A program made the position numbers and the translations under genes. Below are positions 883-56,423 of a stretch of DNA of 64,000 nt, one piece after another; positions within the stretch are counted from its first letter, which is position 1; the number at the start of each line of letters is the position of its first letter. The notes beneath the pieces are model-generated. The model was not told where the DNA came from. It ran no database searches and worked only from the letters and a program-made list of their open reading frames with translations. The stretch lies in assembly GCA_002269645.1 (NCBI GenBank), contig NIVC01001980.1, forward strand, positions 62,001 through 126,000. Direction: 5' to 3'. This stretch comes from Macrostomum lignano. Taxonomy: Eukaryota.

Positions 883-2357
883 AATGGCCAATGGCAATAC
901 AGTTACTATGTACTAATTAAGTCAGTACCATAGAGTCGTTCTTGAAGTAGCCCAAAGTACAACTCAAATTACGCATCAAAAATATTAATGACAATTTTTG
1001 GTTATAAATTAAAAGACTAACGGATGTCAGAGTTGAATTATTAAATTGTGTAAATCATTCAACAGATTAAAAAATATCAGAGAAATCGTAGTTATAAATC
1101 ATAGTAAACAATTTTGCAGCCTAGTTGATCCTGCAATTACTCGATTGAATAATGCATTGGCCGTCTATGGCACAGACTGGGCCTTTCCTAATACCAATGA
1201 ATTGCGTACTCACAGAATCAACTAGGCTGCAAAAGGGTAGTAACATGTAATGCAAACAGATTATACAGACAGAAGCGAGAATAGAGACATTAGCACCAGG
1301 TATAACATAGATGGCACAACTACTCAAGTAGAAGCACGGGAAAGTACATTTCTTGGAAAATTTTAGGAGACATGCTTTACCGAAAAAGTACATTACGGAG
1401 ATCGGAGGTTTATTATCTACGCACGATCACTCGAAGCTTTTTGTTTCAGGATATGAAATTAATATAAAATTCTAGTTTTATAAATGAAAAACTCTAGGAA
1501 TATCAATAGAACTATAAGAAAGGCGACCTATCAAATGATGAACTTTGGGTCTGCCTCCTATTAAAAACAATAACAATTTTTTAGCTGAAAATTGGAAACC
1601 TCCTGTCTCCGTAATGTACTTTTAGGTTCTTCTACTTGAGTAGTCCTTGGATAACATATCTACGAAAATGTAGCATGTAAAATATAGTAAATTTACATTA
1701 TATAATCTATTGTGTGGAATATAGTTCCCGTACAGAACAAATAGTATACACATTTATGCACATTTAATTAATGATTTTAATCACATTGCAAGGTAAAGGA
1801 ATAATCAACACACGCACAAGGAATGGTAAATAAAAATCCAAAGTAAAAACTATATAGATAGAAAGAGAAAAAAGTCAATCAAATGTTTTGTTCGCAAGCA
1901 GACAAGGCGCAATAACCGCGATGCAATGATGAGCATCGCTACAGAACACAGAGAAGTGCACAAAGACTGGAGTACATTCGTTATAGTTCGTTAGCAACAA
2001 AATACAGTACATAAGAAAGGCTTCAATATTATAGTGAGAAATCAACATGCTAGACAATAGACAGTAACAAGTAATCCAAAGTATGAGGTGATGAATTTGG
2101 CTACTGAAAAAATAAACAGAATGCCCTGATTAGTGGGTCAATCTACCGAGTCAATAGACAGCTTCAAAGCCCTTCTGCTTCATCTGTTGACCTGGCCGGC
2201 TCAGCAATGGCCGGCTTGCCAACAGTTCCAATTATCTTTGTCTCCTTGGCAACCTGGCGAGTGCGTGAAGACGGATGCATTGGAGCAGCATAATAGAATG
2301 ATTTGAATGCGTTTTACATGCTCTCGCCAGTAGTCAACTTGCAAATTTAAGGTAATT

Positions 2358-5300
2358 TCATTGATATTGACGCTGAAAACAGTGCCGCCTCACCCGTCTA
2401 TCCAGCTCGTACACGGAGTCGGGCAGGTCCAGCTGATCTGGCCCGACCAGATGGAACACCTCCTGCAGGCAGTCGGCAAACTGCTGGTAAAGCCCAGGAG
2501 CGGTGAATCTGGCGAACCACCACCAGAACATGCGGGTCCGCCTGTCCGCGTGCAGGTGAATGAGGCAAGCCAGGTTGCTGGACCAGCGCGGATCGCCGGT
2601 GAGCAGGTCGCGCAACTCCTACAGATGGCAGGCAGGTCCCTGTTCAGGCGCTTACCGCTCTGAATTTACAGACCTCTCTTTCCTATTAATATCCTTTTCT
2701 CCGCTACCTCTTCTATTATAAATCTCTCTTGTATATACCCCTCCCTCTCCATCTCTACCCTACCTCTCCCCATCTCTATCCTACCTCTCTACATTTCAAG
2801 CCTCCCTCTCTCCATCTCTACCCTACCTCTCTCCATCTCTATCCTACCTCTCTTTATCTCTGCCCTACGTCTCTCCATTTCTAGACTAGCTCTCTCCATC
2901 TTTAACCTACCTCTCTCCCTACCCTACCCTCTACGGTATCTCTACCCTACCTCTTTCCATCTCAAGCCTCCCCATCTTCATATCTACCCTCCCTCACTCC
3001 ATCTTTACCCTCCCTCACTCCATCTTTACCCTCCCTCACTTCATCTTTACCCTCCCGGCCTCCCTCACTTCATCTTTACCCTCCCGGCCTCCCTCACTCC
3101 ATCTTTACCGTCCCTCACTCCATCTTTACCCTCCCTCACTTCATCTTTACCCTCCCTCACTCCATCTTTACCCTCCCCCACTCCATCTTTACCGTCCCTC
3201 ACTCCATCTTTACCCTCCCTCACTCCATCTTTACCCTCCCTCACTCCATCTTTACCTTCCCTCCCTCCATCTTTACCCTCCCTCACTCCATCTTTACCCT
3301 CCCTCACTCCATCTTTACCCTCCCCCACTCCATCTTTACCGTCCCTCACTCCATCTTTACCCTCCCTCACTCCATCTTTACCCTCCCTCACTCCATCTTT
3401 ACCCTCCCTCACTCCATCTTTACCTTCCCTCCCTCCATCTTTACCCTCCCTCACTCCATCTTTACCCTCCCTCACTCCATTTCAAGCCTGTCTCTCTTTA
3501 TCTCTACCCTTCTTTTCTCCATCTCAACTTTTTATCTGTACCCCTTCTACTTGCCCGTCTACCCTTTCACGGCAAATAAAGAGGCCGAGTTTGCGCACCT
3601 TCAGAAAAGCGGAATGCGGCAGCGCATCGTAGCCGCAGTGCGCGTACAGCAGCACGTATGGCTGGCCAACCAGCGGCTCCAACACGCTCAACACTAGCAG
3701 AGCCAAATCTTCGTAGTTGCGCTGAGCCAATGGCGGCATCCGGGACCCTATGACAACAATAACTGGCCGGCCATGGACATCGTGGCCGCTGTGGAATAGA
3801 CAGCGGGCGGCCCGCAGCCGGCTGAGGTCCTGCTGCCTGGGGAAATAATAATCGAATTGATTTTATAGGTGTAAATCGCAATAATAAAAAATGAAGGTCA
3901 GTTTAGCTGACCTCTGAGCACGCACACGGGTAAGTAAGCAGGCCCAGACTCACAGAGGGTGTACAGCGGCCCCGAGCTTCTCATCCCTTGCCATGCCTCA
4001 AGTAATGATTTGTGCCTTCTGCCCAGGCGCAATAGCAATTAGCTTTTGGCCATTATTCTACAGTTTTCCTACGTTTATCATCTATCCACCCCTGCTTATC
4101 TTTGCAAAAGCGTGAAATAAGCGCGGATACGTACAGTCATATGCACAGGCACCCACTCACACAGGAGTGTACAGCGGCCCTAACTTCATTAGCATGTACA
4201 TTGTACACTTCACTGTGCCTTGGGGGGCTGGCCCTAAAGGCCGTTAATTGACACGAGCAGAGCCAAGCCGAGATTCCAATTTAGCCTCAAATTAATCTTG
4301 ATGCGCATCAACCATGCGTGCGTTTAAAACTCGCTCGTCACTGATCTTGAAATCGGGCCGCAGCAGGCCAGCGTGCACTTCATCTCCATCTCAGGACTCA
4401 ACAATATATCATAAAACAGGATTGCACAAGAGTACAGAAAATACAGAAGTACACAGCACTGGCAAGCCCAACCTGGCCCGGCGCAACCAACGATCGTAGC
4501 GACGCTCGCTAGACAGAACCTGATCGGCGCGAATCACGTCAGCGGACTGTCGCCTGCCACCAGCGTTGACTCGTCCGCTGCCTCCCGCACCTTTTCCTAC
4601 ACCGCCGGCGCCGCCACCGCCACCGCTGCTACTGCCGACGCGCTTCTGCCAACGACTAGCGTCGCTGTCGGGATTCTGCTCCATGCGGGCGAAGGCGTGC
4701 GACCCGACGCCGGATACCGCCAGTCCGGAGTCCTGCTCAGCGCCGTAGCCAGCGAGGACACCGGCCGTGGCAGCGACTGCCGTCTCAATTTGGTCGCCCA
4801 TCGCCGCCTCGGACGGTGGCGGAGACGGGCTGGACTCGCGGGAGCTGTCACTGCAGACAGGAAAGTGACATTACAAGCTGAATAGAATGTCAGCTGCCTA
4901 AAACCGCTACCCTTCCCACTGAAAACTTTACCGTGACAAGAATAGTTAGAGTCATTGCAAACAACTCACTAGTGACTCTAGAGAGTCAGGAGCGCATCAC
5001 GTGAGCTGCAGAATCGTAAGAGTCGCAAAAATTCGTCCAAGAGGTGTTGTGTTGACGCTTAACTTTCTACTAACTCAAGTAGACTAAATAGAGTTATGAT
5101 ATATGCGAAATGCAATTCTAATTGATAAAGTGGCGCAGATGCGCATCAGAGTCTTTTTAAAGTCGCAGGCAATAAAACGCCTCAAATCTCGTCATTTTAG
5201 AGTCGTCTCAGAGTCACTTCTTGCCTATTTTTCCTCTGTTAACTGCAAAGAATACGAAATAACCATGGGGCGACGCGTGACTCTGAGATGCTTCTTAGCC

Positions 5301-5959
5301 TAGGTACTGATTTAATCGGGCTTCCTAATGGAGCTTCTTCGTCATCATCGGACTGTGCTACGCGCTGTCTTTCATCAGTAATCTGCTATCATATCCCACA
5401 CCAATGCAGAGCACATCAAGAAGCCAATTCAATTCAATACAGGCCGCTCACCGCTGCTCGCCAAGCGGATTAGCGGCAATCCGAATGCCCCGGCCCTGGT
5501 GCACCGGTTCGCCCATTAGGCCGCCAAGATTGGCGCCGGCCAGGGCAATTTTTGACTGACGCAGCTCGGCCGGCCGGCGGGGAAAGTACAGGGCGGCCAG
5601 CTCCGGGTAGCAGGCGCCGTTCTGGTCGCCGGTAGCCAAAACCAGGCGGCTCAGGCCGTCGCCGTGTCGTTCAAGAAATCGGCGCAAACAGCGCAGAATG
5701 AGATGGGCGCCTTCCTCTGGCGGATAGCCGCGCTTAATGGAATGAATTGGGGCCAGGCCGAGAGTGTCCAAGCCGCGATCCAGCACCTGTTCCAGCACGG
5801 CTCGGGTGCTGTTGTACAGGGCGCTCTCCGCCGCTGTGCGATACTTGGCGTTGTAGCGGGGCCCGATGGTGTGGATGATGAAGCGTGCCGGCAGGCGGTA
5901 GCCTTTGGTGACCTTGGCCTCGCCTGTTCTGCAACCTGCGCGAGTGGATAGATAGATAA

Positions 5960-5995
<36 letters not shown>

Positions 5996-6348
5996 CTAGA
6001 TAGATAGTAGATAGCGAGAAAGAGCGAGCGAAGCGAGCTCTTTCGAGCTTGCTTGCCGCAGCCAATCACGCTGAAAGCACGCACACAAGATCACCGGAAA
6101 CGATTAAGGCAGCTGGAAAGCCAATGGGCGCGGTAAGCGCTTTTATCCAGAGGAACTACCTACTGGAACCAGCCATGCCGAACGAAAATCAGACTACTCA
6201 AGTAGTGCAAAAGAGTGCGAGCAACTACCGAGAAATCTAATTTTCGTAACCGCTCCGGTGCAGGTCCTGGCAATAGATGGTAGATAGCGAGAAAGAGCGA
6301 GCGAAGCGAGCTCTTTCGAGCTTGCTTGCCGCAGCCAATCACGCAGCC

Positions 6349-12589: not shown

Positions 12590-13310
12590 GCACTTGATAA
12601 TCCAATGATTATTAGGCTTGATAAACCAAGGATTATTGCACTTGATAAACTAAAGATTATTGCACTCAATAAGCCAAGGATTACTGCACTTGATAAGCCA
12701 AGGATTGTTGCACTTGATAAACAAGGATTGTTGTATTTGATAAACCAAGTATTATTGCACTTGATAGGGCCTAAACTAAGAGTTGTTGCACTTGATAAAC
12801 AAGGATTATTGCACTTGATAAGCCAAGGATTACTGCACTTGATAAGCCAAGGATTATTGCACTTGATAAACCAAGGATTATTGCATTTGATAAACCAAGG
12901 ATTATTGCATTTGATAAACCAAAGATTATTGCACTTGATAAGATAAGGATTAGGCCTATTGCACTTGATAGACTAAGGATTATTGCACTTAATAAATCAA
13001 AGATTATGCACTTGATAAGCCAAGGATAATTGCACTTGATAAGCCAAGGATTATTGCACATGATAAACCAAGGATTATTGTACTTGATAAACCAAGGATT
13101 GTTGCACTTGATAAACTAAGGATTATTTCATTCAATAAGCCAAGCCAAGGATTACACACTTGATAAGCCTAGGATTATTGCACTTAATAGGCCTAAGCCA
13201 AGGATTATTGCACTAGATTAGAAAAGGACTAATGCATTAGCTTAGACATCAATTTTTGCACTTGATAAATAAAGGATTATTGCACTAATTGAGAAAATGA
13301 TTATTGCACT
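12590..13310. repeat. 24-bp minisatellite AAGGATTATTGCACTTGATAAACC, about 28 copies
   Basis: Direct tandem units. Confidence 0.9.
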
Positions 13311-13344
13311 AGCTGAGAATAGGATTAGGCCTATGCTATGGCTA

Positions 13345-14621: not shown

Positions 14622-17600
14622 ATGTCTCTACAGTTTGCTCTTGAATTAGCTCGGTCTGCTGGCGAGGTATGTTTTTAAAGGGGATTTAGCTTTCGCTTTT
14701 ATAGTATGAAAACATCGCGTCGGTTTTAGTATTAGGATTTTAGCAGTACACTTTCCAACGCGTACTTACTCTGCTCTTAATTTTTTTAGATTGCAACACT
14801 AATATGTTAATTAATTACTTCGCTATTTTTTAGATCATTAAAGAAGGCTACTTTAAACAAAAGGTTATTAGTCAAAAATGCTCGATTGCTGATTTGGTGA
14901 CAGAAACTGATACAAAGGTTGAGAATTTCGTTCAGAAGAAGATATCGGAGCAATTTCCCACGCATGAGTAAGATATTTTGAGGACTATAGCATCTTTCTT
15001 TAATTTTCATATTTTATGCTCCATTATTTCATTGTTTCATACACATTATTAGTTTTAAGCTCATATTTTCTCCCCTTTGTTATAGGTTCATAGGAGAAGA
15101 ATCCGTGTCTAATGGAGCTAAAATTAGTTTCACTGATTCTCCAACTTGGATAATTGACCCCGTCGATGGAACTTCAAATTTTGTTCATCGTTTCCCCTTC
15201 TGTTGTATTTCTATTGCATATGCAGAGAAAAAGAAGGTAAATTTTAAATTTCAGTTTTAATGCTATTTTAATAATATGAGTTAATAAAACTATTTAGCCA
15301 ACAGGGCCAAAAGCAGCAAGAGGGAAGGCACAGGCGTGGCGACAAAGGCAGCGGACGAAACGAGTCCTGCGATAGCGAATATATTTTAGGATTTGAGGCG
15401 ATTAAAAGGGAAGTCACGAAGCAACGGAATAAAAGCATTACAAGAAAATTAATAAAAAAAAATTTTACGAGCCAAAGCGCTCTCGCAGCGCGCACGAGAG
15501 AGCGTGAGCGCACAAATAAAAGGGGGCCGACGCCGCCCACCCCCAACCCAACACCCCGCCTGCCGGCCGGCACCCACCCAGCACCCCACCTTGCGGCAGG
15601 GATGCACACGCGCGGGCCGCACGCACAGACGGGCGGAGGGAGCGGCCCCGTCGGCTAAACACGATTACAGAGCAGGTTAAAACCGGCCCCTGAAATCGCA
15701 ACCTTAGCCAACAGGGCCAAAAGCAGCAAGAGGGAAGGCACAGGCGTGGCGACAAAGGCAGCGGACGAAACGAGTCCAAAAATCCCAAACCAGGGAGGAG
15801 GTCACGCTGAGGGGAGGAGTGAAGCCAGGCGCAGCGGCGCACCGCGCTCAACCGAAGGCGGTAGGTACCGCTCTACAGCGCTGCTTGCCCAGTCACCGAC
15901 TCGCATGATTGAATCGATGGGGATGCCGGCCTCCGCCGCGGATGTAGCGCCACCTCGACGCAACGAGTGCCCAGAGAACCTGGCTGGCTCGGCGAACCCG
16001 GCCTGTCGAAGTGCCGCGGACAGGCGCCTCGCGAAGGTGCGCGCGGTGAGCGGTGCGGTGGACCGTCTGGTTCGGGTACTGAACAAGTGATGCTGGGCGT
16101 CCTGCGGTCGGTTAATGCGCAGCTGCTTCTGGAGCGCGGTGACCGGGCAGAGTGGATGTCCGTCTGGGAGCTGCGGCAAGAAAACTCGGTGCTGGCGCGC
16201 CCCGAACTGGTTGGTCTTCGACCTCGGAATGACGAGGATGACGCCCGCCCTTGACGGCCGGATGCAGCTCGCACTGAGGTCTCGCTGCGGATCGAACCGG
16301 CCGGATACGCACAGGTTGGCTCGCCGTAGCATGGCCCACCAGCCCACGATGCAGGCGCACCAGAATGCGCAGTCCCTGGGCTCTTCAGGTCGCAGCACGC
16401 CGTGCAGCCGCTGCAGGTCGGCCGGCCGCAACGCTCGTTTGCTCCTTGGGGCGGCGCCGAGGAGCCGGCGGGCGCCGCGCAGGGCAAGCTGAACCAGTGG
16501 CTGCCTCGTCGGGTCAGCCACGCTGTTTGATTTGTAGAGCCAAGACACGGCGGCGAGGTGGCAGGATAGGCTGCTGACTGAGAACAGCCGGTTGTTCGCC
16601 AGCTCCGCCAGGTAGTTGCACACGTCGGCGGGCTGCGCTGACAGCGGTTGAAGTCTGTGGGCGGCGCAGAATCGCATCCAGGACGCGCACTGGCTGGCGT
16701 AGGCGGAGCGAGTTGAGCTGGCGAAGCCTTGGCTGAGCAGTCGACGTGCCGGTGCGGAGAGGCCGGGACCCGGGACCACAGGAGGCGGACCTGAAACAGA
16801 AGGTGGGAGGCAGCGGCAGAGCTCAAGCAAGCGGAGGCAAGCAAGCTGGTTGGCACATAGCAGGTGCCATAGAAGCGAAACAGAAAGTTGGCAAGCTGGC
16901 TGGGGTCATGCGCTCTGGACAGCGGGTCTGCGAGCAGCTGGAAGCGGCCAGGCACATGGTGCGCGCGGACGATGATGTCGCGTTGAATGCAGGTCAGGGC
17001 GACGCGCTTCTGCAGGTCGGCAATACCTTGGTGCTTGGCGGAACCCGAGTTAATGATGCCGCAGGCGGCGGTGCTGTCAGTGTAGACTGCAACCGAGCAG
17101 CCGCTGAAGGCTTCTTGGTGCTGCAGAATCGCAACCAGCGGGGCGGCGCACTCCTTGAGGTTGATGTGCAGCTCCTTGAACGCGCCATCACAGTCGGACT
17201 GCCAGTCGATGTAGAGCCAAACCGGTTCTCTGTCGACGAAATGCAGCACAGCACCGCCTCCAATGTCACAGGCGTCAGACTCAATCGCTCCAGCCGGCCG
17301 ACGCGAGGGCCAGGCAGCTCTAGGCGGCAGCGTGCTCAACGCGGTCATCCACCACCTCAGCTGCGACTGGAGCTCCTCCGTGACGCCGACCCTGTCGGAC
17401 GGATGCGCCAGGCTGTTGACCAGCTCGATCAGCGGCCGCAGGAAAGTTCGCCCGTGCTGGGCGGCAGTGCACAAGTGGCTGAGGTGCCCGAGCAGCTTCT
17501 GCAGTTCCGCCTTGCACAGGCTCCTCCGCGAGAGGCAGGTGTCAAGGAGAAGCTGAAGCTTTTCGGCTTTGTCGGCTGGGAAGGAAAGACTGGCTTGCAC

Positions 17601-20600
17601 GGTGTCGATGTCAATGCCGAGGAATCGCAGCTTTGTCGTCGGCGGCACCGACTTTTTCTCGTTGATGGTGAAGCCAAGCCTGGTGAGCAGGTTGCGCAGC
17701 TCGTGGTAGGCCCTGTCACACTCGGCTTTCGTCCTGGCCATGACGAGGAAGTCATCGATGAAAACGACGGTTGCCAGGAACCCCTTGCGACACATCATTC
17801 GCCGGGCCGCTTGCGTGAGGCGATGGAAAATGCTGACGGAGGCTCTGCTGCCGAATGGTAACCGCGTATCCACCAGGAAGGTTGAGCAGCCATTGCCGAA
17901 GTCCCAGTGGATGCCGGTGGCTTGGTAGCACTGCGGAGAAATTGGCACGCTGCGGTAGGCTGACGCGATGTCCACCTTTGCCATAAACCAGCCGGGCTGC
18001 ATCATCCTGACGGCCTCGTCGACGGAGGTGAAGCGGAGACGCCGTTGTTGGGCATAGTGATCGTTCAGGCTGCAGCCGCGAGGGACGGAGCAATCATGGA
18101 TTAGCCGGATGCCGGAGCTGTCTTTCGGAATGGCTCCCAGCGGACAGACCATCGCAGGCTTGTCCACGACTGGGACGTACCTCCCGAGCCGGATTTCTTC
18201 ACCGATAACAGCTTGGACTTGGTCGCGATTCCGGTTGACGGACTGGTAGTTGCTGCAGAGACACGGCGTAAAGTCGAAGTCATCGACAATGGAGAAGCCG
18301 CTCTCGATGCCGTCGAGAATAAAATCAGCGTCGGGGTCGCCCACAAGCTCGGAGCGCCAGGCGTCGATGCAGAGATCGCCCACTGGCTGCGTCAGATCGG
18401 ACATCCGCACTGGAGGCTTGACGATGCAGGGCACGGGAGCGGGCTGAGCGAGGCAGTTAAAAGCAGGAGGGGTAAAATCGGTTTCGCGCGCCGTGTCGGC
18501 GCGCTTGCTCAGTTTTTTGCGTGATTTTGCTCGGAGTGGCTGCCCTCACAGATTCGGCAGGCATGGAGGAATCGGCAGTTGCTCCTCATGCAGCCGTTGG
18601 TGCTGTTGAAGGACAAGCACAGCTCGCGGCCTGAGGATGTCCGCGGACCCATGACGCGGCTCTTGTTGCTAGGCTGGTTTCGCTTGGCTGTCTGATTGTA
18701 CTGGTCCGTCTTAATGCTGAGCAGGTGCCTGATCGACATCTGGGCGCAGTCTTTGCCCCAGCGAAGGCTGTTGGCTGCGCGGTGCTGGCGGTAGTCATGG
18801 TCGAATCTGATCACCCGGTGCGCTGGGAATCTGTCGAATAGCTCGGCCACCTGGACATTGTACTGGGCGTAATCTTTGACTTGCTCAGTTGTGCTGTACA
18901 CTTGGCCCTTGCTGGTCAGCTGCGGCGCTGTGTCTTCAAGTATCTGAAGCAGGACCTTCATACTGCCGGCGAACCACTGCCCAATTGTCATGCCGTCCAG
19001 CTTGGTCGTCGACTTCTTGAGCACGAGGCCGCCAGAGCTGCCCCTGGTGAGCAGCTCGTCAGCCTGGCCTGACAGATCATCGACAAAGTCTCTGACGAGT
19101 AGACACGGCTGCCCGACCGGCCGGGGGTTGGCTCTAGCGCTGACGGGGCCTGTTGGGTTGATAAGTTCAGCGAAAAGATTCTGCTGCTCACCTGATTCTG
19201 TACGAGCAGTCACGACGGCGCGTTCACGAAGCTCTCGTTCGCGTGTTTGAAGCTCTAGGAGCTGCAGCCGTTTCTGCGCCCGCCGAATCTCGCCGTCCAG
19301 GTCCGCCTCCCGTGGGTCCCGGCCTTGGTCTTGGAGCTCCTCCTGCGCACAGGGCGATGCCGATGCCGATGTCAATGCCGATGTCCCGCCGTCTTGAAGC
19401 TGTGACTGCCCCTCGTGTTGTCTCAGTCTGGCTTGCAAGGCCGACTTATTGCCTGCGGTTGAGAGGCCTCGGCTACCCAGCTCACTCTTGAGTTGTTTGA
19501 CTGTTAGTCGGTCCACACGATGCATGATAGCCAGAGCCAGATAGTCGCAAAAAAATTTTACGAGCCAAAGCGCTCTCGCAGCGCGCACGAGAGAGCGTGA
19601 GCGCACAAATAAAAGGGGGCCGACGCCGCCCACCCCCAACCCAACACCCCCGCCTGCCGGCCGGCACCCAGCACCCCACCTTGCGGCAGGGATGCACACG
19701 CGCGGGCCGCACGCACAGACGGGCGGAGGGAGCGGCCCCGTCGGCTAAACACGATTACAGAGCAGGTTAAAACCGGCCCCTGAAATCGCAACCTTTAGTA
19801 ATACTTTTTCAGGTGGCTTTGGCTGTTGTTTACAATCCGATTCTTGATGAGATGTATCATGCTGAGCTTGGCAAAGGTGCATTCCTCAATGGTGCCAAGC
19901 TTTCTGTCAGTGATGCTCAAAGTAAGCAGCTTATTGCTTTATACTTTGTGTACTAATTTACGAGTATAAAGATATTTTTATTAACATAAAGATAAAGGCA
20001 TTGCTTATTTGTCTATGTTGAATTTTGAAATTAAACTAGTAGACAATTTTCTTGGCAAAAAGCAATTCATATTCAGTTGAGTTGAACTCGTTATCAGCCT
20101 GATACGCTAAAGTCTTTGTTCAATAGTCCTAAAATTGATTTGCTACATTTTACTGAATGCTTTGTGTGCTGGAGTTGGTCCAAATAATGAAGGAATCATT
20201 TCTGTTTTTTAATTAATACTGCACACTGTTTGCACAAATTTTAAAAGTCAAAAGTTATTTTAAGCAAAATTTCCTGTTTTTGCTTGCTTAGATCTCTCCA
20301 GCTCGATTCTGTGCTCCGAGTGGGGCTCCCAGCGGGATGCCACGATGGACACAAAGGTGCGCAACATGCACAAAGCCGTGCTGGCCTCTCGGGGCATTCG
20401 ATCCATCGGGTCTGCCGCCCTGTCCTGCTGCATGGTGGCCCGCGGCTCGGTGGAGTCATACTTCGAGTACGGCATTCACTGCTGGGATGTGGCAGCTGGC
20501 GAGCTCATCGTGCGAGAGGCTGGCGGCGTGTCCGCCTCGCCAGACGGTGAGAATTTTGCTAAAGTTTTTTTTCTAAATCTATTTGTCTTGCAGATTTCAA

Positions 20601-27552: not shown

Positions 27553-28260
27553 GGTCATAATTCTCAAATACAGTGTACTGCATGCTGCGTGCTTATTAAG
27601 CTTAATACTGTTGGAAAATTAATTCTCTGAATAGAAAAGACCGCCCATTTTGGCGGATTCGATTCCACAAACAAAAGCATTTTGACGCTCTCCCGTATAG
27701 ACTGCAAGCTCAACGGCTCTGCTTAACGCGAACGAGAATGCGAATAGCCAGAGGCTTCAAAAGAGGTGACGGAAAAAAGTGAGAAATGCAGAGCTCAATT
27801 TGGCCAGATGAATTACAAAATGCCCCCCCCCTTCTCTGGGAGCAGCTGGGTCAGAGCGGTTGTTTTGTGCGGCAGGTGTGAAGCTTAAGGGCAGCTGCAG
27901 CCGGAGCAATTATTCAACTGCCGATAAACAGAGCGGCTAATTATGGGGTTTTGACCTCCTCGAGCAGAGCTCAGCATTAACTCACAAGAATTTAAGCTTT
28001 ATAACAGCCTGTTGCTACCTCTCATTTCAATTTCAGGAGCGTAGCAATACCCATTGCAAAGCAAGATTGAGTTAGTTTATTAAATAATTACTGTACAGCA
28101 TTCGGCAGCACCGATGCTCGATTGGTAGATCGAACCCGCGATTTTGTCCGGGAACTGAGTAAGAGTTTTCACTGATTCACTGTCCAAGTTAATGCAAATT
28201 TGTGCCTGTTGAGCAATTGCTGTAACCTGTCATAAGGCATGAATACTGTTTACCGTAGCC

Positions 28261-28310
28261 CAGGGGTAGGAAAGGTCCGGCCATAGGCCACATGCGGCGG
28301 CCCGCGTAGC
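28261..28310. mobile_element. Possible hAT-type terminal fragment
   Basis: caggggtaggaaa...ggcccacatgcggc...ggcccgc resembles Charlie/Buster termini. Only one end seen. Confidence 0.3.
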
Positions 28311-28364
28311 CTCTCTTTCCGGCTCTCGGGTCCTTTGAGACTTCACAATAGCAATGCGGTGCGC

Positions 28365-28735
28365 TTAAGCTCTCTTCTCTCCTATCCCCTCGTCTCCTTT
28401 CCTTTCCTCTCCTCTCATCTCTCCTCTCTCTTTCATATCCTCTCCCTTCTCCTCTCTCATCTCTACCCTCTCATCTCTCATCTCTACCCTCTCATCTCTC
28501 ATCTCTCCCCTCTACTATCTCGTCTCTACCCTCTCCCCTCTCGTCTAACCCCTCTCCTCTCTCATCTCTCCCCTCTCCTCTCTCATCTCTCCCCTCTCCT
28601 CCCTCATCTCTACCCTCTCCTCTCTCATCTCTCCCCTCTCACCTCTCGTCTCTCCCCTCTACTATCTCATCTCTACCCTCTCACCTCTCATCTCTCCCCT
28701 CTACTATATCATCTCTCCCCTCTCCTCTCTTCAAT
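28365..28735. repeat. CT-rich degenerate 21-bp minisatellite
   Basis: ctcatctct(a/c)ccctctcct units. Confidence 0.85.
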
Positions 28736-29128
28736 CCTCTTATTTCAATCAGCGACTACCTGAACAGGTTGCCCGTCAAAGCTTTTTAAAAGTTCGCAAA
28801 TAAAAAAATTAACCGGCTTTTACATGAGAATAATTCTCATCGATTCCAGGCCGCACTACTTCATGATAGTAGATAGCAGTAGTATGTAAAAGGATTCCAG
28901 ACACCACCCCCATACCCATTACAAAGTCAAGTCATGCGCAGCTGTGGTGCCGACCAATCGGTGAAGACTTTGGCCTTCGCCTGCGGCGGTCCCTGCTCAG
29001 GCTGTGAGGAGGAGGAGGAGGAGGAGGAGGAGGAGCTTAAAAGCTCCTCAGCCGCCGCTGCCGCAGGCGCCTCAGTTGTAAATCTCCGCCAGTCGCTGAA
29101 GCTCAGAACTGCTGCTCCAGACGACAAC

Positions 29129-32100
29129 ATGCCGAAACAGCCGGAGTATCTGCTGCTTTTTCACGCCGTCACCTGCGGCCCAGCCGCCCCCGACTCGGAG
29201 CTGGCTGAGGAGCTGTCGCCGATCTGTCAGCTGGCTTATCTGGTGTACAATGTGCAGCAGAAGAAGGTGAAGATGGCATTAGAGTTTATTAGAGAGGCGC
29301 TACATTGTCTGTCTTGTTGTCTGTCTTTTTGTCTGTCTTGTTGTCTGTCTTTTTGTCTGTCTTGTCTGTCTTGTTGTCTGTCTTTTTGTCTGTCTTGTCT
29401 GTCTTGTTGTCTGTCTTTTTGTCTGTCTTGTCTGTCTTGTTGTCTGTCCTGTTGTCTGTATTGTCTGTCTTGTTGTCTGTCTTTTGTCTGTCTTGTCTGT
29501 CTTGTTGTCTGTCCTGTTATCTGTCTTGTTGTTTGCGTTGTCTGTCTTGTTGTCTGTCTTGTTGTTTGTCTTGTTGTCTCTTCCAGTGTTTGTTTAGAAA
29601 CTGTTCGGATTTAGCTTATGTACTTTTCGAAGAAACCTTGTCTTCAGAAAAGCTTTGTACTTGTTCAATTGTTCATGATGCACCCAAAGTGAGAAATTGT
29701 GACTAATAGTTCCCCTCCGGAAACTTACGAGTCTCCAGGTGATGACGCTGGCCCAACATCCGGTGAAGCCGCTTCTGCCGCCGGGACCTGCCGTCTCCTC
29801 AGATTTTTCCGAGGAAGCGGTCGAGACACGCGAAGACGGCCGGGCACCGGTGTCGGCGGACTGCACGGCGGTGACTGGCGTCACCGAGGAGTCGCTGGAT
29901 GCGGCCGCGCTTCTGGCCGACTGTCTAGACGAGGTGCGATAGTGGATTATCCCTGAGTGCTGTTCGATCCTTCCATTCTGGCCCTGCCTCTATGGATGCG
30001 AATCCCCAGAACCCTGGATGCGAGTCCCCAAACCCTGGATGCGAGTCCCCAGAACCCTGGATGCGAGTCCCCAGAACCCTGGATGCGAGTCCCCAGAACC
30101 CTGGATGCGAGTCCCTAGAACCCTGGATGCGAGTCCCCAGAACCCTGGATGCGAGTCCCCAGAACCCTGGATGCGAGTCCCCAGAACCCTGGATGCGAGT
30201 CCCCAGAACCCTGGATGCGAGTCCCTAGAACCCTGGATGCGAGTCCCCAGAACCCTGGATGCGAGTCCCCAGAACCCTGGATGCGAGTCCCTAGAGCTTT
30301 ATCTCTGAGCCGGTCTTCAATCTTTTAACAGATGGACCGAGCCTTGCTAAACGCGGGCGTCCATCCCAGCGCTGACGGTCGCGACCTCCGTCTGATCACT
30401 GACGGACAGGCGCCACTGCGCCTCCTGCTGCACCCGGAGGCCGCCGCCAAGGGTATCCGCCTGCCCAGCTACTGCTACGCCTTCCACGACCTGCGCAAGG
30501 AGTTCTGCAGGGCGCGCCGTAGCCGACAGCCCGCCACTTCGCTGGAGGAAATGATGGCTGGTCTGTCCTGCCAGCTGTCTTCGTGTCTGTCTGTCTCGTG
30601 TGTCTGTCTGTCTGTCTGTCTATGCATCCGTCTTGTGTGTCTGTTTGTTTTGTGTCTGTCTCAGTGTCTGACTTGTGCTATTCTTAGAGCATGTTTGTTT
30701 GCTTGTCTCACCCAACAGAATGTCCCATACTCGCAGAGCTGGGGCTGCAGCAGCAACATCAGCAAGCCGGGGAGCCTGTCGCAGCGGCAGCCGCAGCGGC
30801 AGCGGCCAGGACTCAGGACACGGGCTTCAGCGCTAGCATGTGCCTGGCCATGTCTCGCATCATTGGCTGCCTGCTTGAAGACGGTGAGTTCCCGTCTGCC
30901 GGATAGTGATAACTGGAGGCAGCACACTCAGTGTCAAGGCCGGCTTCAAGCAACGCAGGCGCAGCTGTTCTTATCTATACTTCATTCCGCTTTTAGGGCA
31001 CAAGTTTCTGGAGCCGGAATCGATATCAAAGGAGTACCGCCCGGCGTTGATGTGAGTTCAGTTGTACCTAAGTACCCGAACCATAACCATAACCCTAACC
31101 CTAACCCAAACCCTAACCCTATCCATAACCCTAACCCTAAACCTAACCCTAACCCTAACCCTATCCCTAACCCTAAACTTAACCCTAACCCTAACGTTGT
31201 GGATGTACATCGGTTTCGTCTTAGCTACTGAAATAACAAAAGATCATTTCTAAAAGCACTCAGAGCCGTATCGATTTTACATGTATAGGGGTTGTAGCCT
31301 AGTGGTTAGAGCGTCTGTCTCGCGACTTGAAGGTCGGGGATTCGATTCCCGATCCCACTGGAACAATTTGTGTCTTTTTATGCAAGACACTTAACTTTGC
31401 ATTGCTTCAGTTCACTCAGCTGTAAAATGGGTGCCAGCATTAGCTGGGGTAGTTGAGGGTGTGTGTGGCGATCCTCCAGTCCTTGGACTGAACAGCCGTA
31501 CGCAGCCTTCAGATGCGCCGCGCAAATAACTGCGGCTGAGCTGTCGGTTGCACATATCGGCCTATTGGGGCAGGTGTAATCAGTTATTGTTACTATTATC
31601 GATATTAAAATCTAATTTAATATCGCATTGTTCGTTTAAAAAAGGAATTAATTAGATTTTACGTTTCGATCAAATTTAAAATGCTTACTAAAGTCAGCTC
31701 ACTTAAATATCAGCCCACTAGTGCAGCATGTATAAACTGTATGCGGGACAAAAATGGACTCAGATGCCTAAAGCTTTGAGTCTTTGATTAATATTAAGCC
31801 CTATATACAGATTGTCTTATCTTTCCTATCCAGATACTGTGTTTAAATCTCCTTGATAGCATGAACGTGATGTCTGGTTGGATTTGTCTATCTCTACCGG
31901 TAGTTCCCGCAATTTCAACCCCCGAACCGGCAGCCGCAAATCCGAGCCGGTCGAGCCCGAGACGGTGGTGCGACTGCGCGGCCTCCCCTGGCAGGCCGGC
32001 GACATCGAGGTGGCCACCGTCTTCTTCAGCGGCCTCAACGTCTGTCCGGGCGGCGTCGCCCTCGTTCTCAGCCGGACAGGCGGCCGGCGCAACGGCGAAG

Positions 32101-35100
32101 CCCTCGTCCGTTTCGAATGCGCCGAGCACCGAGACTTGGCGCTGCTGCGCCACCGGCGCCACCTGGGCCGGCGCTACATCGAGGTGTTCAAGGCCAACGC
32201 GCGCGACTACCTGGCCGTGGCCGCCGCCTGCACGGCGGAGGCCGAGGAATTCCTGGCTCGGCTTGACGGCTCCGGGCAGCAGCTCATCCGCATGCGGGGC
32301 CTCCCCTACGTGGTCACCGCGGAGCAGGTGGTGAGCGACAACTCTTGCCAGCCCTGACACCAGATCTGACACCAGCCCTGACACCAGCCCTGACACCAGC
32401 CCTGACAACAGCCCTGACACCACTCCTGCCAGCCCTGACACCAGCCCTGACACTAGCCCTGACACCAGCCCTGACACCAGCCCTGACACTAGCCCTGAAA
32501 CCAGCCCTGACAACAGCCCTGACACCAGTCTCAATTATATCAAGTTCTACACAACTTGTAAAACAAACTACCAACAAGTATACGGTAGCTTGAAATATTC
32601 AACGCACCCTTCGGGTGCAATCTCAGCAGACCTAGCAGAGTTAACACGCTGCTAGGCCTTTGGCGGCTTGGTCTGGGAGACTTTTTTATCAAGCTTGTTT
32701 CTCTCACAGCAGCGGCAGGCGGCCAGGCGCTCAGCGTTATCACAGACTGGGCTGCGGTTTTAGCTGGTAGTTATACAGTCTGCATTCAGTGATCTCGTCT
32801 GCGATCCACCGCTGCCAACGAATGCGCCCTGGGTTGTGTGTGTGCAATGCGGTTGGTTCGCGTTAACGCAAAAGAGATCTAATTGTTGCTTGAAAGTATT
32901 AGCTGTTTTTTTAGCCTGGAATCGCTTTATCAGATATTATGGCTTCAAGTGCAGAGGGACTTGCTTTTCAAGCATATAAACTGGTATTATTGTCTAGCTA
33001 AATATTTAGTACATTCAGGGGTCAGTAACACGAACAGCTGACACCTCAGACGTTCAGGTGGCTTTGACAGATCTTTGGCGGTAGGGGTTCCAAAGGGTTC
33101 CAAGGGGTTCCAAGGGGTTCCAAGGGGTTCCAAGGGGTTCCAAGGGGTTCCAAGGGGTTCCAAGGGGTTCCAAGGTGTTCCAAGGTGTTCCAAAGGGTTC
33201 CAAGGGGTTCCAAGGGGTTTTGAGGTATTTCAACGGATGTATTGGCGGAGAAAGTGTCACTGAGAGAATATCCAGAGAGGTTTTCCTGGGTAATCGGTTC
33301 GAAATGGAACCGGTTGGTTATAAAAAAATTTTCGAAGCTCCTCGTAGTGTTCCGAGAGAATATACGCTCGCATGAGGTTCCGAAGCATTACCAGAGTTCT
33401 GAAAGAATGTAAGCTCGTAAGTAGTTTGGTAATACATTTACAGCTATGCACTATATTACTACTAAGTAGGCACTAGCGAAAACGACAATTATTCTCTCTA
33501 AAACAAAAAACTCGTCCCCTGCTTTGCCCAGCTGGAATTCTTCGACAAGTCGTCCTGCCCGGTGCAGTTCGGCCGTGACGGGCTGCTCTTTGCCCAGCGC
33601 GCCGACGGACGCGCCACCGGCGACGCCTTTGCTCTGTTTGCCAGCTCCGAGCGCGCCGAGCGCGCCCTGGAACGCGGCCACCGTCAGCACATCGGCAGCC
33701 GCTACGTGGAATTGTTCAAATCAACCCCGGCTGAGCTCAACCAGGTGCTGGGCGGCTTTCAACAACAACAGCAGCAGCAGCAGCAGCAGCAGGTTTATCA
33801 GCATCAAAAGCAACAGCAGCAAATGCACAGTCAGCAACAACAACAACAACAGCAGCAGCAGCAAAAGCAACAACAGCTGCAGCAGCTGTGGCACCAGCGG
33901 CATTTGCTACGCATCGGCGGGATGCCTGCAGAAGCGACCGTTGCCGACATCCTCGGCTTTCTTGAGCAGCACGCGGCCGGCATCGCCTACCAGGTGAACC
34001 TTTTTCGTCACAGCTTCACTCCAGGTGGATTCTCCCAGCAGAGCCCCATGATGGATTCCCGAGGAAAATCCCATGATTGAATTCCCAAGGAAAATCCCAT
34101 GATGGATTTCTATGATGGCTTCGCCTAAGAAAACCCCATGATGGATTTCCATGGATTCCTCGAGGATAATTTCATAATGGATTTCCATGGATTCCCCGGG
34201 AAAATCCCATGATGCTCCCATTATGGATTCCCAAATGAAAATCCCGTGATGGAATTCCCAAAGAAAATCAAATCATGGATTTCTCATGATGGATTCCCCG
34301 AGGAAAATCCCATGATGGATTTCCATGGATTCCCCGAGGAAAATCCCATGATGGATTTCCATGGATTACCCGAGGAAAATCCCATGATGGATTTCCATGG
34401 ATTCCCCGAGGAAAATCCCATGATGGATTTCCATGGATTTCCCCGAGGAAAATCGAATCATGGATTTCCATGAATTCCCCGAGGAAAATCGAATCATGGA
34501 TTTCCATGAATTCCCCGAGGAAAATCCCATAATGGATTTCCCATGATGGATTTCCGAGGAAAATCCCATGATGGATTTCCTATGATGGATTCCATAAAAG
34601 CCAACTTAGAATTTGTTGGTGTAAAATCGATGTCAAGGATTTCCAGATAGAAATAGAAACGAAACTTCCGAATGGCAAACTCAAATATTCGTTGCAATTA
34701 TTCAGAAAATAAATTCTTCCATAGCTGTATTATGTTAAACCACCATGCATCCAACCAGGGGGTGCACCAGGTGTTAAATCACCTGGGTCAGCCCACCGGC
34801 GAGGCGGTCATCGAGATGACGTCAGACTGGGCAGCCCGGATGGCCTGCGAGGCCAAGGACGGCAGTCAGTTCTGGAGACTGGACGGCCGGGGACCGGGCG
34901 GAGTGATTGTCGAAGTGCAGCTCTGCGGCACTGCCGAATTGCCGCCACCTCCGCCTCCGCCTCCGCCGCCGCCGCTGCCGCAGCACCTGCTGCCACCGCC
35001 AAATCCGTCGCCTCTGATGTCGCACGCCCCGATGTTGCTGCCGCAGTTTCCGTTGCTGACGGTGGCGCACTGCCAGCCGCCCTATTTCCCGGCCAATCTG

Positions 35101-51970: not shown

Positions 51971-54900
51971 GTGGGGGAGCCAGCCCCCCTTTACCACTAG
52001 ACTAACTAATGCCAGGGGCGTGGGGGCGGCCAGCCCCCACTATACCACTTAGACTAACTAATGCCAGGGGCGTGGGGGCGGCCAGCCCCCCACTATACCA
52101 CTAGACTAACTAATGCCAGGGGCGTGGGGGGCGCCAGCCCCCCACTATACCACTAGACTAACTAATGCCAGGGGCGTGGGGGGCGGCTAGCCCCCACTAT
52201 ACCACTAAACCACTAGACTAACTAATGCCAGGGGCGTGGGGGCGGCCAGCCCCCCACTATACCACAAGACTAACTAATGCCAGGGGCGTGGGGGCGGCCA
52301 GCCCCCACTATACCACTAGACTAACTAATGCCAGGGGCGTGGGGGGCGGCCAGCCCCCACTATACCACTATACCACTAGACTAACTAATGCCAGGGGCGT
52401 GGGGGCGGCTAGCCCCCCACTATACCACTAGACTAACTAATGCCAGGGGCGTGGGGGGCGGCCAGCCCCCCACTATACTACTAGACTAACTAATGCCAGG
52501 GGCGTGGGGTGCGGCGAGCCCCCCACTATACCACTAGACTAATAAATGCCAGAGGCGTGGGGGCGGCCAGCCCCCACTATACCACTAGACTAACTAATGC
52601 CAGGGGCGTGGGGGCGGCGAGCCCCCTACTATACCACTAGACTAATAAATGCCAGGGGCGTGGGGGGCGGCCAGCCCCCCACTATACCACTAGACTAATA
52701 AATGCCAGGGGCGTGGGGGCGGCCAGCCCCCACTATACCACTAGACTAACTAATGCCAGGGGCGTGGGGGCGGCCAGCCCCCTACTATACCACTAGACTA
52801 ACTAATGCCAGGGGCGTGGGGGGCGGCCAGCCCCCCAATATACCACTATACCACTAGACTAACTAATGCCAGGGGCGTGGGGGGCGGCTAGCCCCCACTA
52901 TACCACTTAGACTAACTAATGCCAGGGGCGTGGGGGGCGGCCAGCCCCCACTATACTACTAGACTAACTAATGCCAGGGGCGTGGGGGCGGCCAGCCCCC
53001 CACTATACCACTAGACTAACTAATGCCAGGGGCGTGGGGGGCGAGCCCCCACTATACCACTAGACTAATAAATGCCAGGGGCGTGGGGGGCGGCCAGCCC
53101 CCACTATACCACTAGACTAATAAATGCCAGGGGCGTGGGGGGCGGCCAGCCCCCCACTATACCACTAGACTAATAAATGCCAGGGGCGTGGGGGGCGGCC
53201 AGCCCCCCACTATACCACTAGACTAACTAATGCCAGGGGCGTGGGGGCGGCCAGCCCCCACTATACCACTAGACTAACTAATGCCAGGGGCGTGGGGGCG
53301 GCCAGCCCCCCCACTATACCACTAGACTAACTAATGCCAGGGGCGTGGGGGCGGCCAGCCCCCCACTATACCACTAGACTAACTAATGCCAGGGGCGTGG
53401 GGGCGGCCAGCCCCCCACTATACTACTAGACTAACTAATGCCAGGGGCGTGGGGCGGCGAGCCCCCCACTATACCACTAGACTAACTAATGCCAGGGGCG
53501 TGGGGGGCGGCCAGCCCCCTACTATACCACTAGACTAACTAATGCCAGGGGCGTGGGGGCGGCCAGCCCCCCACTATACCACTATACCACTAGACTAACT
53601 AATGCCAGGGGCGTGGGGGGCGGCCAGCCCCCACTATACCACGTAGACTAACTAATGCCAGGGGCGTGGGGGCGGCCAGCCCCACTATACCACTAGACTA
53701 ACTAATGCCAGGGGCGTGGGGGGCGGCCAGCCCCCTACTATACCACTAGACTAACTAATGCCAGGGGCGTGGGGGGCGGCTAGCCCCCACTATACCACTA
53801 GACTAACTAATGCCAGGGGCGTGGGGGCGGCCAGCCCCCACTATACCACTATACCACTAGACTAACTAATGCCAGGGGCGTGGGGGGCGGCTAGCCCCCC
53901 ACTATACCACTATACCACTAGACTAACTAATGCCAGGGGCGTGGGGGGCGGCCAGCCCCCCACTATACCACTAGACTAACTAATGCCAGGGGCGTGGGGG
54001 GCGGCTAGCCCCCCACTATACCACTAGACTAACTAATGCCAGGGGCGTGGGGGGCGGCCAGCCCCCACTATACCACTAGACTAATAAATGCCAGGGGCGT
54101 GGGGGCGGCCAGCCCCCCACTATACCACTAGACTAACTAATGCCAGGGGCGTGGGGGCGGCTAGCCCCCCACTATACCACTATACCACTAGACTAACTAA
54201 TGCCAGGGACGTGGGGGGCGGCCAGCCCCCCACTATACCACTAGACTAACTAATGCCAGGGGCGTGGGGGGCAGCCAGCCCCCCACTATACCACTAGACT
54301 AACTAATGCCAGGGGCGTGGGGGGCGGCTAGCCCCCACTATACCACTAGACTAACTAATGCCAGGGGCGTGGGGGGCGGCCAGCCCCCCACTATACTACT
54401 AGACTAACTAATGCCAGGGGCGTGGGGTGCGGCGAGCCCCCACTATACCACTAGACTAATAAATGCCAGAGGCGTGGGGGGCGGCCAGCCTCCCACTATA
54501 CCACTAGACTAACTAATGCCAGGGGCGTGGGGGCGGCGAGCCCCCTACTATACCACTAGACTAATAAATGCCAGGGGCGTGGGGGGCGGCCAGCCCCCCA
54601 CTATACCACTAGACTAATAAATGCCAGGGGCGTGGGGGCGGCCAGCCCCCCACTATACCACTAGACTAACTAATGCCAGGGGCGTGGGGGCGGCCAGCCC
54701 CCTACTATACCACTAGACTAACTAATGCCAGGGGCGTGGGGGGCGGCCAGCCCCCCAATATACCACTATACCACTAGACTAACTAATGCCAGGGGCGTGG
54801 GGGCGGCCAGCCCCCACTATACCACTTAGACTAACTAATGCCAGGGGCGTGGGGGCGGCCAGCCCCCACTATACTACTAGACTAACTAATGCCAGGGGCG

Positions 54901-56423
54901 TGGGGGCGGCCAGCCCCCACTATACCACTAGACTAACTAATGCCAGGGGCGTGGGGGTGGCGAGCCCCCTACTATACCACTAGACTAATAAATGCCAGGG
55001 GCGTGGGGGGCGGCCAGCCCCCCACTATACCACTAGACTAATAAATGCCAGGGGCGTGGGGGGCAGCCAGCCCCACTATACCACTAGACTAATAAATGCC
55101 AGGGGCGTGGGGGGCGGCCAGCCCCCACTATACCACTAGACTAACTAATGCCAGGGGCGTGGGGGCGGCCAGCCCCTACTATACCACTAGACTAACTAAT
55201 GCCAGGGGCGTGGGGGCGGCCAGCCCCCAATATACCACTATACCACTAGACTAACTAATGCCAGGGCGTGGGGGGCGGCCAGCCCCCACTATACCACTTA
55301 GACTAACTAATGCCAGGGGCGTGGGGGGCGGCCAGCCCCCCACTATACTACTAGACTAACTAATGCCAGGGGCGTGGGGTGCGGCGAGCCCCCCACTATA
55401 CCACTAGACTAACTAATGCCAGGGGCGTGGGGGGCGGCCAGCCCCCTACTATACCACTAGACTAACTAATGCCAGGGGCGTGGGGGGGCGGCCAGCCCCC
55501 CACTATACCACTATACCACTAGACTAACTAATGCCAGGGGCGTGGGGGGCGGCCAGCCCCCCACTATACCACGTAGACTAACTAATGCCAGGGGCGTGGG
55601 GGGCGGCAGCCCCCCACTATACCACTAGACTAACTAATGCCAGGGCGTGGGGGGCGGCCAGCCCCCTACTATACCACTAGACTAACTAATGCCAGGGGCG
55701 TGGGGGCGGCTAGCCCCACCACTATACCACTAGACTAACTAATGCCAGGGGCGTGGGGGGCGGCCAGCCCCCCACTATACCACTATACCACTAGACTAAC
55801 TAATGCCAGGGGCGTGGGGGCGGCTAGCCCCCCACTATACCACTATACCCACTAGACTAACTAATGCCAGGGGCGTGGGGGGCGGCCAGCCCCCCACTAT
55901 ACCACTAGACTAACTAATGCCAGGGGCGTGGGGGGGCGGCTAGCCCCCCACTATACCACTAGACTAACTAATGCCAGGGGCGTGGGGGGCGGCCAGCCCC
56001 CCACTATACCACTAGACTAATAAATGCCAGGGGCGTGGGGGCGGCCAGCCCCCCACTATACCACTAGACTAACTAATGCCAGGGGCGTGGGGGCGGCTAG
56101 CCCCCCACTATACCACTATACCACTAGACTAACTAATGCCAGGGACGTGGGGGGCGGCCAGCCCCCCATATAACCACTAGACTAACTAATGCCAGGGGCG
56201 TGGGGGCAGCCAGCCCCCCACTATACCACTAGACTAACTAATGCCAGGGGCGTGGGGGGTGGCCAGCCCCCCAGTATACCACTTAGAATAACTAATGCCA
56301 GGGGCGTGGGGGGCGGCCAGCCCCCCACTTTACCACTAGACTAACTAATGCCAGGGGCGTGGGGGGCGGCCAGCCCCCCACTATACCACTAGACTAACTA
56401 ATGCCAGGGGCGTGGGGGGGGGG
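51971..56423. repeat. ~51-bp GC-rich satellite ACCACTAGACTAACTAATGCCAGGGGCGTGGGGGCGGCCAGCCCCCACTAT, about 85 copies
   Basis: Tandem array with variable G/C runs. Confidence 0.97.

Follow-up and report, generated by a model that had tools for sequence, protein, structure and literature searches.

How does a retroelement make its reverse transcriptase (RT) when the RT reading frame opens without an ATG and lies one base out of register with the gene upstream? The question is raised by an intact Ngaro element, a tyrosine recombinase (YR) retrotransposon of the DIRS order, on the minus strand of a 64-kb window of Macrostomum lignano DNA (the window is the whole 64,000-nucleotide stretch analyzed, and all coordinates refer to it). 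A gag-like open reading frame (ORF1), an RT/RNase H (RH) frame (ORF2) and a YR frame follow one another in this order, which can be read directly from the element. Comparison of its gag–RT junction with those of relatives indicates that −1 ribosomal frameshifting at a slippery A_AAA_AAC heptamer is likely to yield a Gag–RT/RNase H fusion. The junction and the frames that it joins comprise the following features:

18509–19525, minus strand: ORF1, "gag-like", 338 codons, from the ATG at 19525 to the TGA at 18511–18509 (translation)
18512–18518, minus strand: slippery heptamer A_AAA_AAC in the gag frame, with AAA in the P-site and AAC in the A-site (sequence; kept in phase in 17 relatives)
18509–18511, minus strand: gag stop codon TGA, immediately 3′ of the heptamer (sequence)
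18486–18504, minus strand: hairpin of eight G/C pairs, 7 nt past the heptamer, a probable frameshift stimulator (sequence, folding)
15873–18545, minus strand: ORF2, the RT/RNase H reading frame (translation, Pfam)
17610–18029, minus strand: reverse transcriptase domain (Pfam RVT_1, 3e-16)
17040–17285, minus strand: RNase H domain (Pfam RT_RNaseH, 7e-4, under the curated cut-off; region conserved in the homologue alignment)
18402–18404, minus strand: first ATG of the −1 frame, 10 codons ahead of the RT core, a possible internal start (translation)

The gag frame ends CAC GCA AAA AAC TGA, and the base preceding the heptamer, a C at 18519, is conserved. A 7-nt spacer, TGAGCAA (18511–18505), leads to a hairpin composed of the arm GCGCGCCG (18504–18497), the loop ACA and the arm CGGCGCGC (18493–18486), which folds with −16.7 kcal/mol (z = −3.6 against shuffles). 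Relative to gag, the RT/RH frame is shifted by exactly −1. A stop at 18548–18546 closes it upstream, and it runs open from 18545, just 9 codons ahead of the slip codons, so that the two frames overlap by 34 nt up to the gag stop codon and by 37 nt with it. The original prediction, made from the letters of the window, had described this gag end, heptamer, spacer and hairpin, and each was recovered base for base on the minus strand; three-frame translation likewise bore out its statement that the RT frame is −1 and open across the gag stop. Its further claim that this frame contains no ATG before a GTG and an "MSDL" region also holds, with the GTG at 18434 and the first ATG at 18404–18402. The proposed fusion of ~1200 amino acids agrees in size with the two frames (338 plus ~879 codons), but its last ~330 ORF2 codons are probably not functional. 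This 3′ part of ~1 kb past RNase H (15873–16905) is an S/P/A/R-rich, out-of-frame read of the YR gene. ORF2 of most relatives ends 70–200 nt after the YR frame opens, and the long tail occurs just in the window element and in locus L003, two G+C-rich elements in which it is probably an effect of composition.

Chance is an unlikely explanation of this arrangement, because the element has just one such heptamer, one such in-phase motif and one such hairpin: AAAAAAC occurs once on the sense strand of the 4502 nt, no other canonical X_XXY_YYZ lies in phase anywhere in gag, and the single perfect hairpin of at least 8 bp (loop 3–10) is the one starting 7 nt after the heptamer. Dinucleotide shuffles produce about one such hairpin per element, with ~0.001 expected in the slot 5–9 nt after the site. 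Among all the 40-nt windows that this G+C-rich element contains, the one after the site ranks in the top 3.2%. An Rfam search of 18350–18650 at a permissive threshold returned no known frameshift element, the single hit being a chance small nucleolar RNA match on the opposite strand.

A search with the RT/RH part gave 558 homologues, the best of them 43–45% identical, from M. lignano, corals, hemichordates and many metagenome and read-archive assemblies. The DNA of 95 loci (L001–L095) was examined for the type of gag–RT junction; the upstream ORFs of the relatives are homologous to the window gag (tblastn E-values to 1e-30). Neither the window gag nor ORF2 is itself in the searched protein collection. 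A scan of viral contigs gave no relative, and a scan of prokaryote genomes gave just three contigs, which are eukaryotic contaminants. Ngaro sequences were seen on contigs of bacterial metagenome-assembled genomes (L093 and L094 in one labelled Flammeovirgaceae, L095 in "bacterium Vin_4" and P0051 in Candidatus Thiodiazotropha), almost certainly as eukaryotic contamination of the bins.

The junctions fell into three types. Gag and RT share one frame at 26 loci (type a; two pairs of these are near-identical copies), with L001, L002, L004, L006, L009, L010 and L012 as examples. The stop codon at the 24 single-stop junctions among them is UGA in 14 (followed by C in 12, mostly as CUA or CUC), UAG in 10 (followed by G in 7) and never UAA, and the stretch between the stop and the conserved RT core is AUG-less in 23 of 26. 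UGA CUA is the consensus context for high basal read-through (PMC4359377), and in their sequence these junctions look like programmed read-through of a leaky stop. RT lies in −1 at 19 surveyed loci and also in the window element, L003, L090, L091, L093 and L094 (type b); L092 has a gag end of the same kind, and its contig stops before RT. The third type has RT in +1 (type c; 7 loci including the outgroup clade, L019, L025, L066, L070 and L079 among them), with overlaps of 200–380 nt and an AUG present in the RT frame, which suggests a third expression strategy. The window element is not of the read-through type, its RT being in −1 and not in the gag frame.

The comparison of related Ngaro families that had been proposed as a check found the heptamer kept in phase in 17 loci amid unalignable flanks. 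C-A_AAA_AAC stands in the canonical gag phase in all 17 (RT 34–51% identical where present), 16 with RT in −1 and one, L092, with the contig end before RT; by source, these are 13 of the 19 surveyed −1 loci, which carry A_AAA_AAC in the gag/RT overlap, and L003, L090, L091 and L092. With the window included, all 18 sites have the canonical phase and a C directly before them, and an alignment anchored on the heptamer shows flanks without any conservation. The residue before Lys varies (P, S, T or A), but its codon ends in A at every site, and the Lys and Asn codons are AAA and AAC throughout. Because three synonymous positions are thus invariant in 18 of 18 loci, protein-level selection is insufficient, and conservation of the encoded residues does not, on these aligned codons, account for the invariant bases. 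Exactly "KN" is the end of 25 of the best 150 gag homologues, and the next commonest terminal dipeptide was found 4 times. In 9 of the 18 loci, among them the window and its four subclade relatives, no codon separates heptamer and stop; in the remaining loci the stop comes 1–11 codons downstream.

Two further −1 loci, L093 and L094, carry another canonical heptamer, C_CCA_AAA, in phase. Overall, a canonical in-phase heptamer was present at 20 of 26 −1 gag/RT junctions versus 1 of 27 −1 RT/YR junctions (Fisher p = 2e-8). The 26 in-frame loci have such a heptamer in one case, and AAAAAAC is found in the last 60 nt of gag in none of them (0/26); in-frame relatives that retain an HPK motif encode its Lys by AAG or AAA. 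Near-canonical runs were noticed in two −1 loci without the heptamer, L031 (CCT TTT TAG, a T5 abutting the stop) and L060 (CTC AAA AAA ATT, containing C_AAA_AAA). L029, L049, L053 and L059, also −1, have no recognizable slip motif at the junction, and in two of them gag is cut by the contig end. On a neighbor-joining RT tree, which is drawn without support values, heptamer lineages spread across the whole ingroup, interleaved with read-through lineages, and the window element and L003 form a basal pair. The tree suggests that the slip site is old and that the mechanism may have switched several times between frameshifting and read-through.

Downstream structure was compared by folding the 40 nt that begin 4 nt past the heptamer and ranking them against all 40-nt windows of the same locus. 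For five of the 18 heptamer loci this stretch ranked in the top 5% of the locus, where 0.9 loci would be expected (combined p = 7e-4 by Fisher's method); the ranks were 0.002 (L003), 0.008 (L092), 0.010 (L037), 0.018 (L047) and 0.032 (window). Within the window subclade, L003, L092 and L090 have G+C-rich hairpins 5–8 nt past the heptamer, unrelated in sequence to that of the window; L091, in which RT is broken by one frameshift, has no such hairpin after its heptamer. The claim that the hairpin acts as a stimulator thus gains from analogous hairpins in three of the four close relatives and loses from the lack of a comparable structure in about half of the heptamer loci. As the weaker half of the overall claim, the hairpin is plausibly a lineage-specific stimulator, judging from these folds.

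Taken together, these comparisons suggest the following route. Most ribosomes on full-length RNA would translate ORF1 and stop at the UGA at 18511–18509. A fraction may slip back by one base with the P- and A-site tRNAs on AAA-AAC (18518–18512), re-pair on AAA-AAA and continue in the −1 frame to produce the Gag–RT/RNase H fusion. The 8-bp G/C hairpin 7 nt downstream probably raises the frequency of slippage, and the stop codon directly after the heptamer may add to it. Programmed −1 frameshifting, as originally inferred, is strongly supported by a heptamer kept in phase and found just where RT is in −1, by the RT/YR junctions as a control and by an RT frame that is AUG-less before the conserved core in 15 of 21 −1 relatives. 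Heptamer-bearing Ngaro elements as a whole very probably make RT as a Gag fusion in the manner of retroviruses, and across the family the fusion seems, from the junction sequences, to be made in sub-stoichiometric amount, through either the heptamer or a single in-frame leaky stop.

Several observations weigh against this reading. The element folds well throughout, and the 3.2% rank of its hairpin is not extreme; about half of the heptamer-bearing loci are without a notable downstream hairpin (no pseudoknot search was made). No copy of the same family was found, the nearest relative having ~51% RT identity. The K-N residues follow a conserved zinc-binding motif, and part of the conservation could be at the protein level. 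The loci share ancestry and are not fully independent observations, and the interleaving of junction types is taken from a tree that carries no support values. Finally, the window element has an AUG in the RT frame (18404) just ahead of the conserved core, so that internal initiation or re-initiation is possible for this copy. This last point leads to the alternative that RT/RNase H is translated independently, from AUG 18404 or GUG 18434, by leaky scanning, by re-initiation 105 nt past the gag stop or from a shorter RNA, the heptamer and hairpin being incidental. An AUG in the same interval is present in 6 of 21 −1 relatives, but it is missing there from 15 of these 21 and from 23 of 26 in-frame relatives, and in several relatives RT homology begins 1–12 codons past the gag stop. 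Independent initiation would also leave unexplained both the absence of the heptamer from in-frame loci and the presence, across unalignable sequence, of an in-phase heptamer with invariant synonymous bases. Nor do the surveyed loci have a conserved splice acceptor ahead of RT, which speaks against a shorter spliced RNA and against the abundant spliced RT message that had been raised as a possible objection. We regard independent initiation as improbable, and as an account of the whole family it does not hold.

The same A6 run could in principle act during transcription: a polymerase that stutters on it and adds one A in some transcripts would bring RT into the gag frame, and slippage of this kind at GA6 (GAAAAAA) is documented in potyviruses (PMC7618844). 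Polymerase slippage is, however, independent of reading phase, and the 18 sites do not behave in this way, as every AAAAAAC lies in the sole phase that allows tandem tRNA re-pairing. The run of A is always exactly six with C on both sides and is never longer, though longer runs slip better; the 3′ C, which makes AAC the A-site codon, is invariant; and L093 and L094 use C_CCA_AAA, with a run of just four A. Stuttering is on these grounds very improbable. We give still less credence to an accident of decay, in which a 1-base deletion would have split a continuous gag-RT frame in a dead element. Single transposon copies often carry frameshifts, and relatives provide instances (one frameshift disrupts RT in L091, and RT has a single frame break in L094 and in L095). 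Against decay, the window element has three intact ORFs and terminal repeats that are 98–100% identical, and a −1 junction with the heptamer recurs in 17 relatives from different hosts. Ribosomal frameshifting at A_AAA_AAC is the reading that we retain.

Expression of the third gene appears to follow another route, for which these features are relevant:

15802–16905, minus strand: tyrosine recombinase frame, in −1 with respect to ORF2, the conserved domain not preceded by an ATG (Pfam Phage_integrase with a SAM-like N-terminal domain)
19190–19192, minus strand: predicted 5′ splice site in gag, cag|GTGAGC, with the exon end at 19192 after base 1 of codon 112 (conservation)
16791–16810, minus strand: predicted 3′ splice site before YR, ctgtttcAG, with the AG at 16792–16791 (pyrimidine tract and CAG; conservation)

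The YR frame of the window contains H-x-x-R and the C-terminal Tyr context. Across loci, YR lies in −1 relative to ORF2 in 27, in +1 in 10 and in 0 in 5, and it is often AUG-less. For the RT/YR junction a canonical −1 slip site was ruled out, given one heptamer in 27 loci and frames that vary among −1, +1 and 0. An acceptor motif (pyrimidine tract and YAG) precedes the first YR motif in 40 of 45 loci. Its distance from that motif is constant, at 56 ± 3 nt in 31 of the loci, and 37 of the 40 acceptors share one phase (p = 7e-15); upstream of many of them a CTAAC-like branch-point motif was noted by eye, without a count. Donor-like GT sites in gag just before its conserved domain are in phase 1 in 41 cases, in phase 0 in one and in phase 2 in none, and 37 of 44 loci contain at least one phase-1 site (comparison with the remainder of gag, p = 6e-9). 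On this conservation, YR appears to be expressed by splicing that joins the first 111 gag codons in frame to YR: the predicted exon 2 starts at 16790, its first two bases completing the split codon, and the gag part of the fusion would hold the SAP domain and most of the long helix of ORF1. The slip site, RT/RH and the remainder of gag would all lie in the predicted intron, and such splicing would explain a YR frame with variable register, no slip site and often no AUG. Two other arrangements were tried and rejected. A mini-intron at the conserved "HMS/HVS" codons before YR has, on inspection, its GT in the wrong phase and a length that would not bring the frames back into register. The t|gtgagg donor at gag Cys326 has a suitable phase but is not conserved in L003, and the conserved 19191 donor is preferred. 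Our search found no literature on gag-YR splicing in Ngaro elements.

The assignment to Ngaro, also part of the original prediction, is borne out by split direct repeats, gene order and RT/RNase H and YR domains. The repeats were located by blastn of the region against the window:

15294–19795, minus strand: whole Ngaro element, ~4.5 kb (4502 nt; split direct repeats, domains, composition)
19549–19795, minus strand: repeat A1, 5′ terminal, 98% identical to A2
15704–15777, minus strand: repeat B1, 100% identical to B2
15456–15705, minus strand: repeat A2
15294–15367, minus strand: repeat B2, 3′ terminal

The layout A1-[ORFs]-B1A2B2 of split direct repeats defines Ngaro elements (PMC8547959; PMC13465315), and a gap of 88 nt between A2 and B2 is a small departure from it. 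The Pfam matches in ORF2 and the YR frame are RVT_1, RT_RNaseH, Phage_integrase and the SAM-like N-terminal domain; no Pfam match to a protease, a DDE integrase or a methyltransferase was obtained in the element, and ORF2 has no Pfam match after RNase H. The methyltransferase domain occurs in DIRS1-like and PAT elements, not in Ngaro (PMC3266345). The element has a G+C content of 62%, and the surrounding M. lignano DNA is A+T-rich, with 31–40% G+C. All three reading frames are intact, without internal stops or frameshifts besides the programmed frame changes. Together with terminal repeats of 98–100% identity, this intactness makes the copy look young, a recent insertion.

Following a SAP domain at its N-terminus, ORF1 has a long helix, then a conserved helical domain and finally a zinc-binding region at its C-terminus; two of these parts are delimited as follows:

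19412–19513, minus strand: SAP domain of ORF1 (Pfam PF02037, 2e-12)
18521–18619, minus strand: zinc-binding C-terminus of ORF1 (invariant or near-invariant columns in a 61-sequence alignment)

An exhaustive HMMER protein search with ORF1 returned 742 homologues, with an alignment starting at residue 3; a word-indexed protein search with gag returned none. The AlphaFold2 model of ORF1 has a pLDDT (predicted local distance difference test) score of 80.5, and a fold search of the PDB with this model matched solely SAP domains, with no capsid-like fold for any part, the central helical domain (~residues 145–282) included. Because this search gave no capsid-like match, the name "Gag" for ORF1 rests on position and not on capsid structure. 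The zinc-binding region comprises a CCCH motif (C303, C312, C317, H321) followed by C323-x2-C326-x3-H330-x4-H335, and ends 3 residues before the stop. CCCH is present in 43 of 52 related loci, 35–60 residues from the gag end, and the second motif, C-x2-C-x3-H-x4-H, follows it in the window and in gag homologues (P0121–P0270). This CCCH plus C-x2-C-x3-H-x4-H C-terminus differs from the CCHC knuckle of retroviral gag; CCHC motifs were additionally seen in the outgroup loci L066, L070 and L079.

The gag-pro junction of mouse mammary tumor virus (MMTV) uses an A_AAA_AAC −1 frameshift site. The window cassette shares with such retroviral sites the heptamer and its phase at the gag end, a stable structure placed 5–9 nt downstream and, as its predicted product, a Gag fusion that carries enzymes. 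It differs in that its predicted stimulator is a simple 8-bp hairpin and no pseudoknot (none was searched for) and in that the gag stop abuts the heptamer; its downstream frame starts with RT, the element has neither protease nor DDE integrase, and YR and split direct repeats are present in addition. Gammaretrovirus-type gag-pol read-through resembles the in-frame Ngaro relatives and not the window element, whose RT is in −1. Some retroviruses make env-type sub-genomic RNA with a donor inside gag, so that the downstream protein starts with the first codons of gag. The splicing predicted here is alike in having a donor in gag, an acceptor before the last gene and an unspliced RNA for Gag and Gag-RT; it differs in fusing ~110 gag codons (SAP and coiled coil) to a recombinase, as predicted from sequence conservation. 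As for recoding in retrotransposons, few heptamers are as shift-prone on mammalian ribosomes as A_AAA_AAC, and a 2003 survey by Gao, Havecker, Baranov, Atkins and Voytas placed pol in −1 in 28 of 51 animal long terminal repeat (LTR) elements, many with classical heptamers, as given in a 2016 review (PMC5009743). LTR gag-pol recoding follows the same Gag:Pol dosage logic, and that survey, as presented there, concerns LTR elements only; the review text that was searched does not mention DIRS, Ngaro or other YR elements. The cassette would work like these retroviral and LTR −1 sites, but the element itself does not belong to those families.

In the open-access literature that was searched, neither frameshifting by ribosomes nor slippery sites nor read-through is mentioned for DIRS or Ngaro elements, although older papers may contain such a mention; this agrees with the earlier remark that recoding is not an established expression route in these groups. 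The ORFs of DIRS-order elements are said there to be such that they "can be frameshifted" or "do not usually overlap", with nothing further (PMC3783388, PMC3266345). We lean slightly towards a broader proposal from the same alignments, namely that Ngaro as a group would use a retrovirus-like programme, with recoding for Gag-RT/RNase H and splicing for a Gag-YR fusion, that is undescribed for YR elements.

The rest of the window contains an intronless calbindin-32-like EF-hand gene (62683–63594, plus strand), 100% identical to M. lignano BOX15_Mlig008310g1, an identity that points to this free-living flatworm as the host, and an ORF with a Macro domain (5448–6065, minus strand). A weak tRNA-like Rfam match lies at 31288–31357 on the plus strand (30.3 bits, with no ARAGORN call), and a tandem array with a period of ~24 bp spans ~12590–13330. 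G+C-rich blocks (0.50–0.62) stand out from the A+T-rich window at 2000–6000, 28000–34000 and 52000–56000; several G+C-rich blocks have ORFs of 200–400 codons without a Pfam match and are possibly other mobile elements.

In annotation, ORF2 of Ngaro elements should be treated as an extension of ORF1 by recoding rather than as a gene of its own that begins at an arbitrary start codon. These findings would be of interest to specialists in recoding and in transposons, and of greater interest if the family-wide programme of recoding and splicing proves true. They would extend classical −1 frameshifting to a retroelement order without protease and integrase, and offer a natural series of lineages that have seemingly switched between frameshifting and read-through at one junction. 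The conserved slip site would thereby provide a concrete rule for Gag:RT dosage in a superfamily spread over animal phyla.

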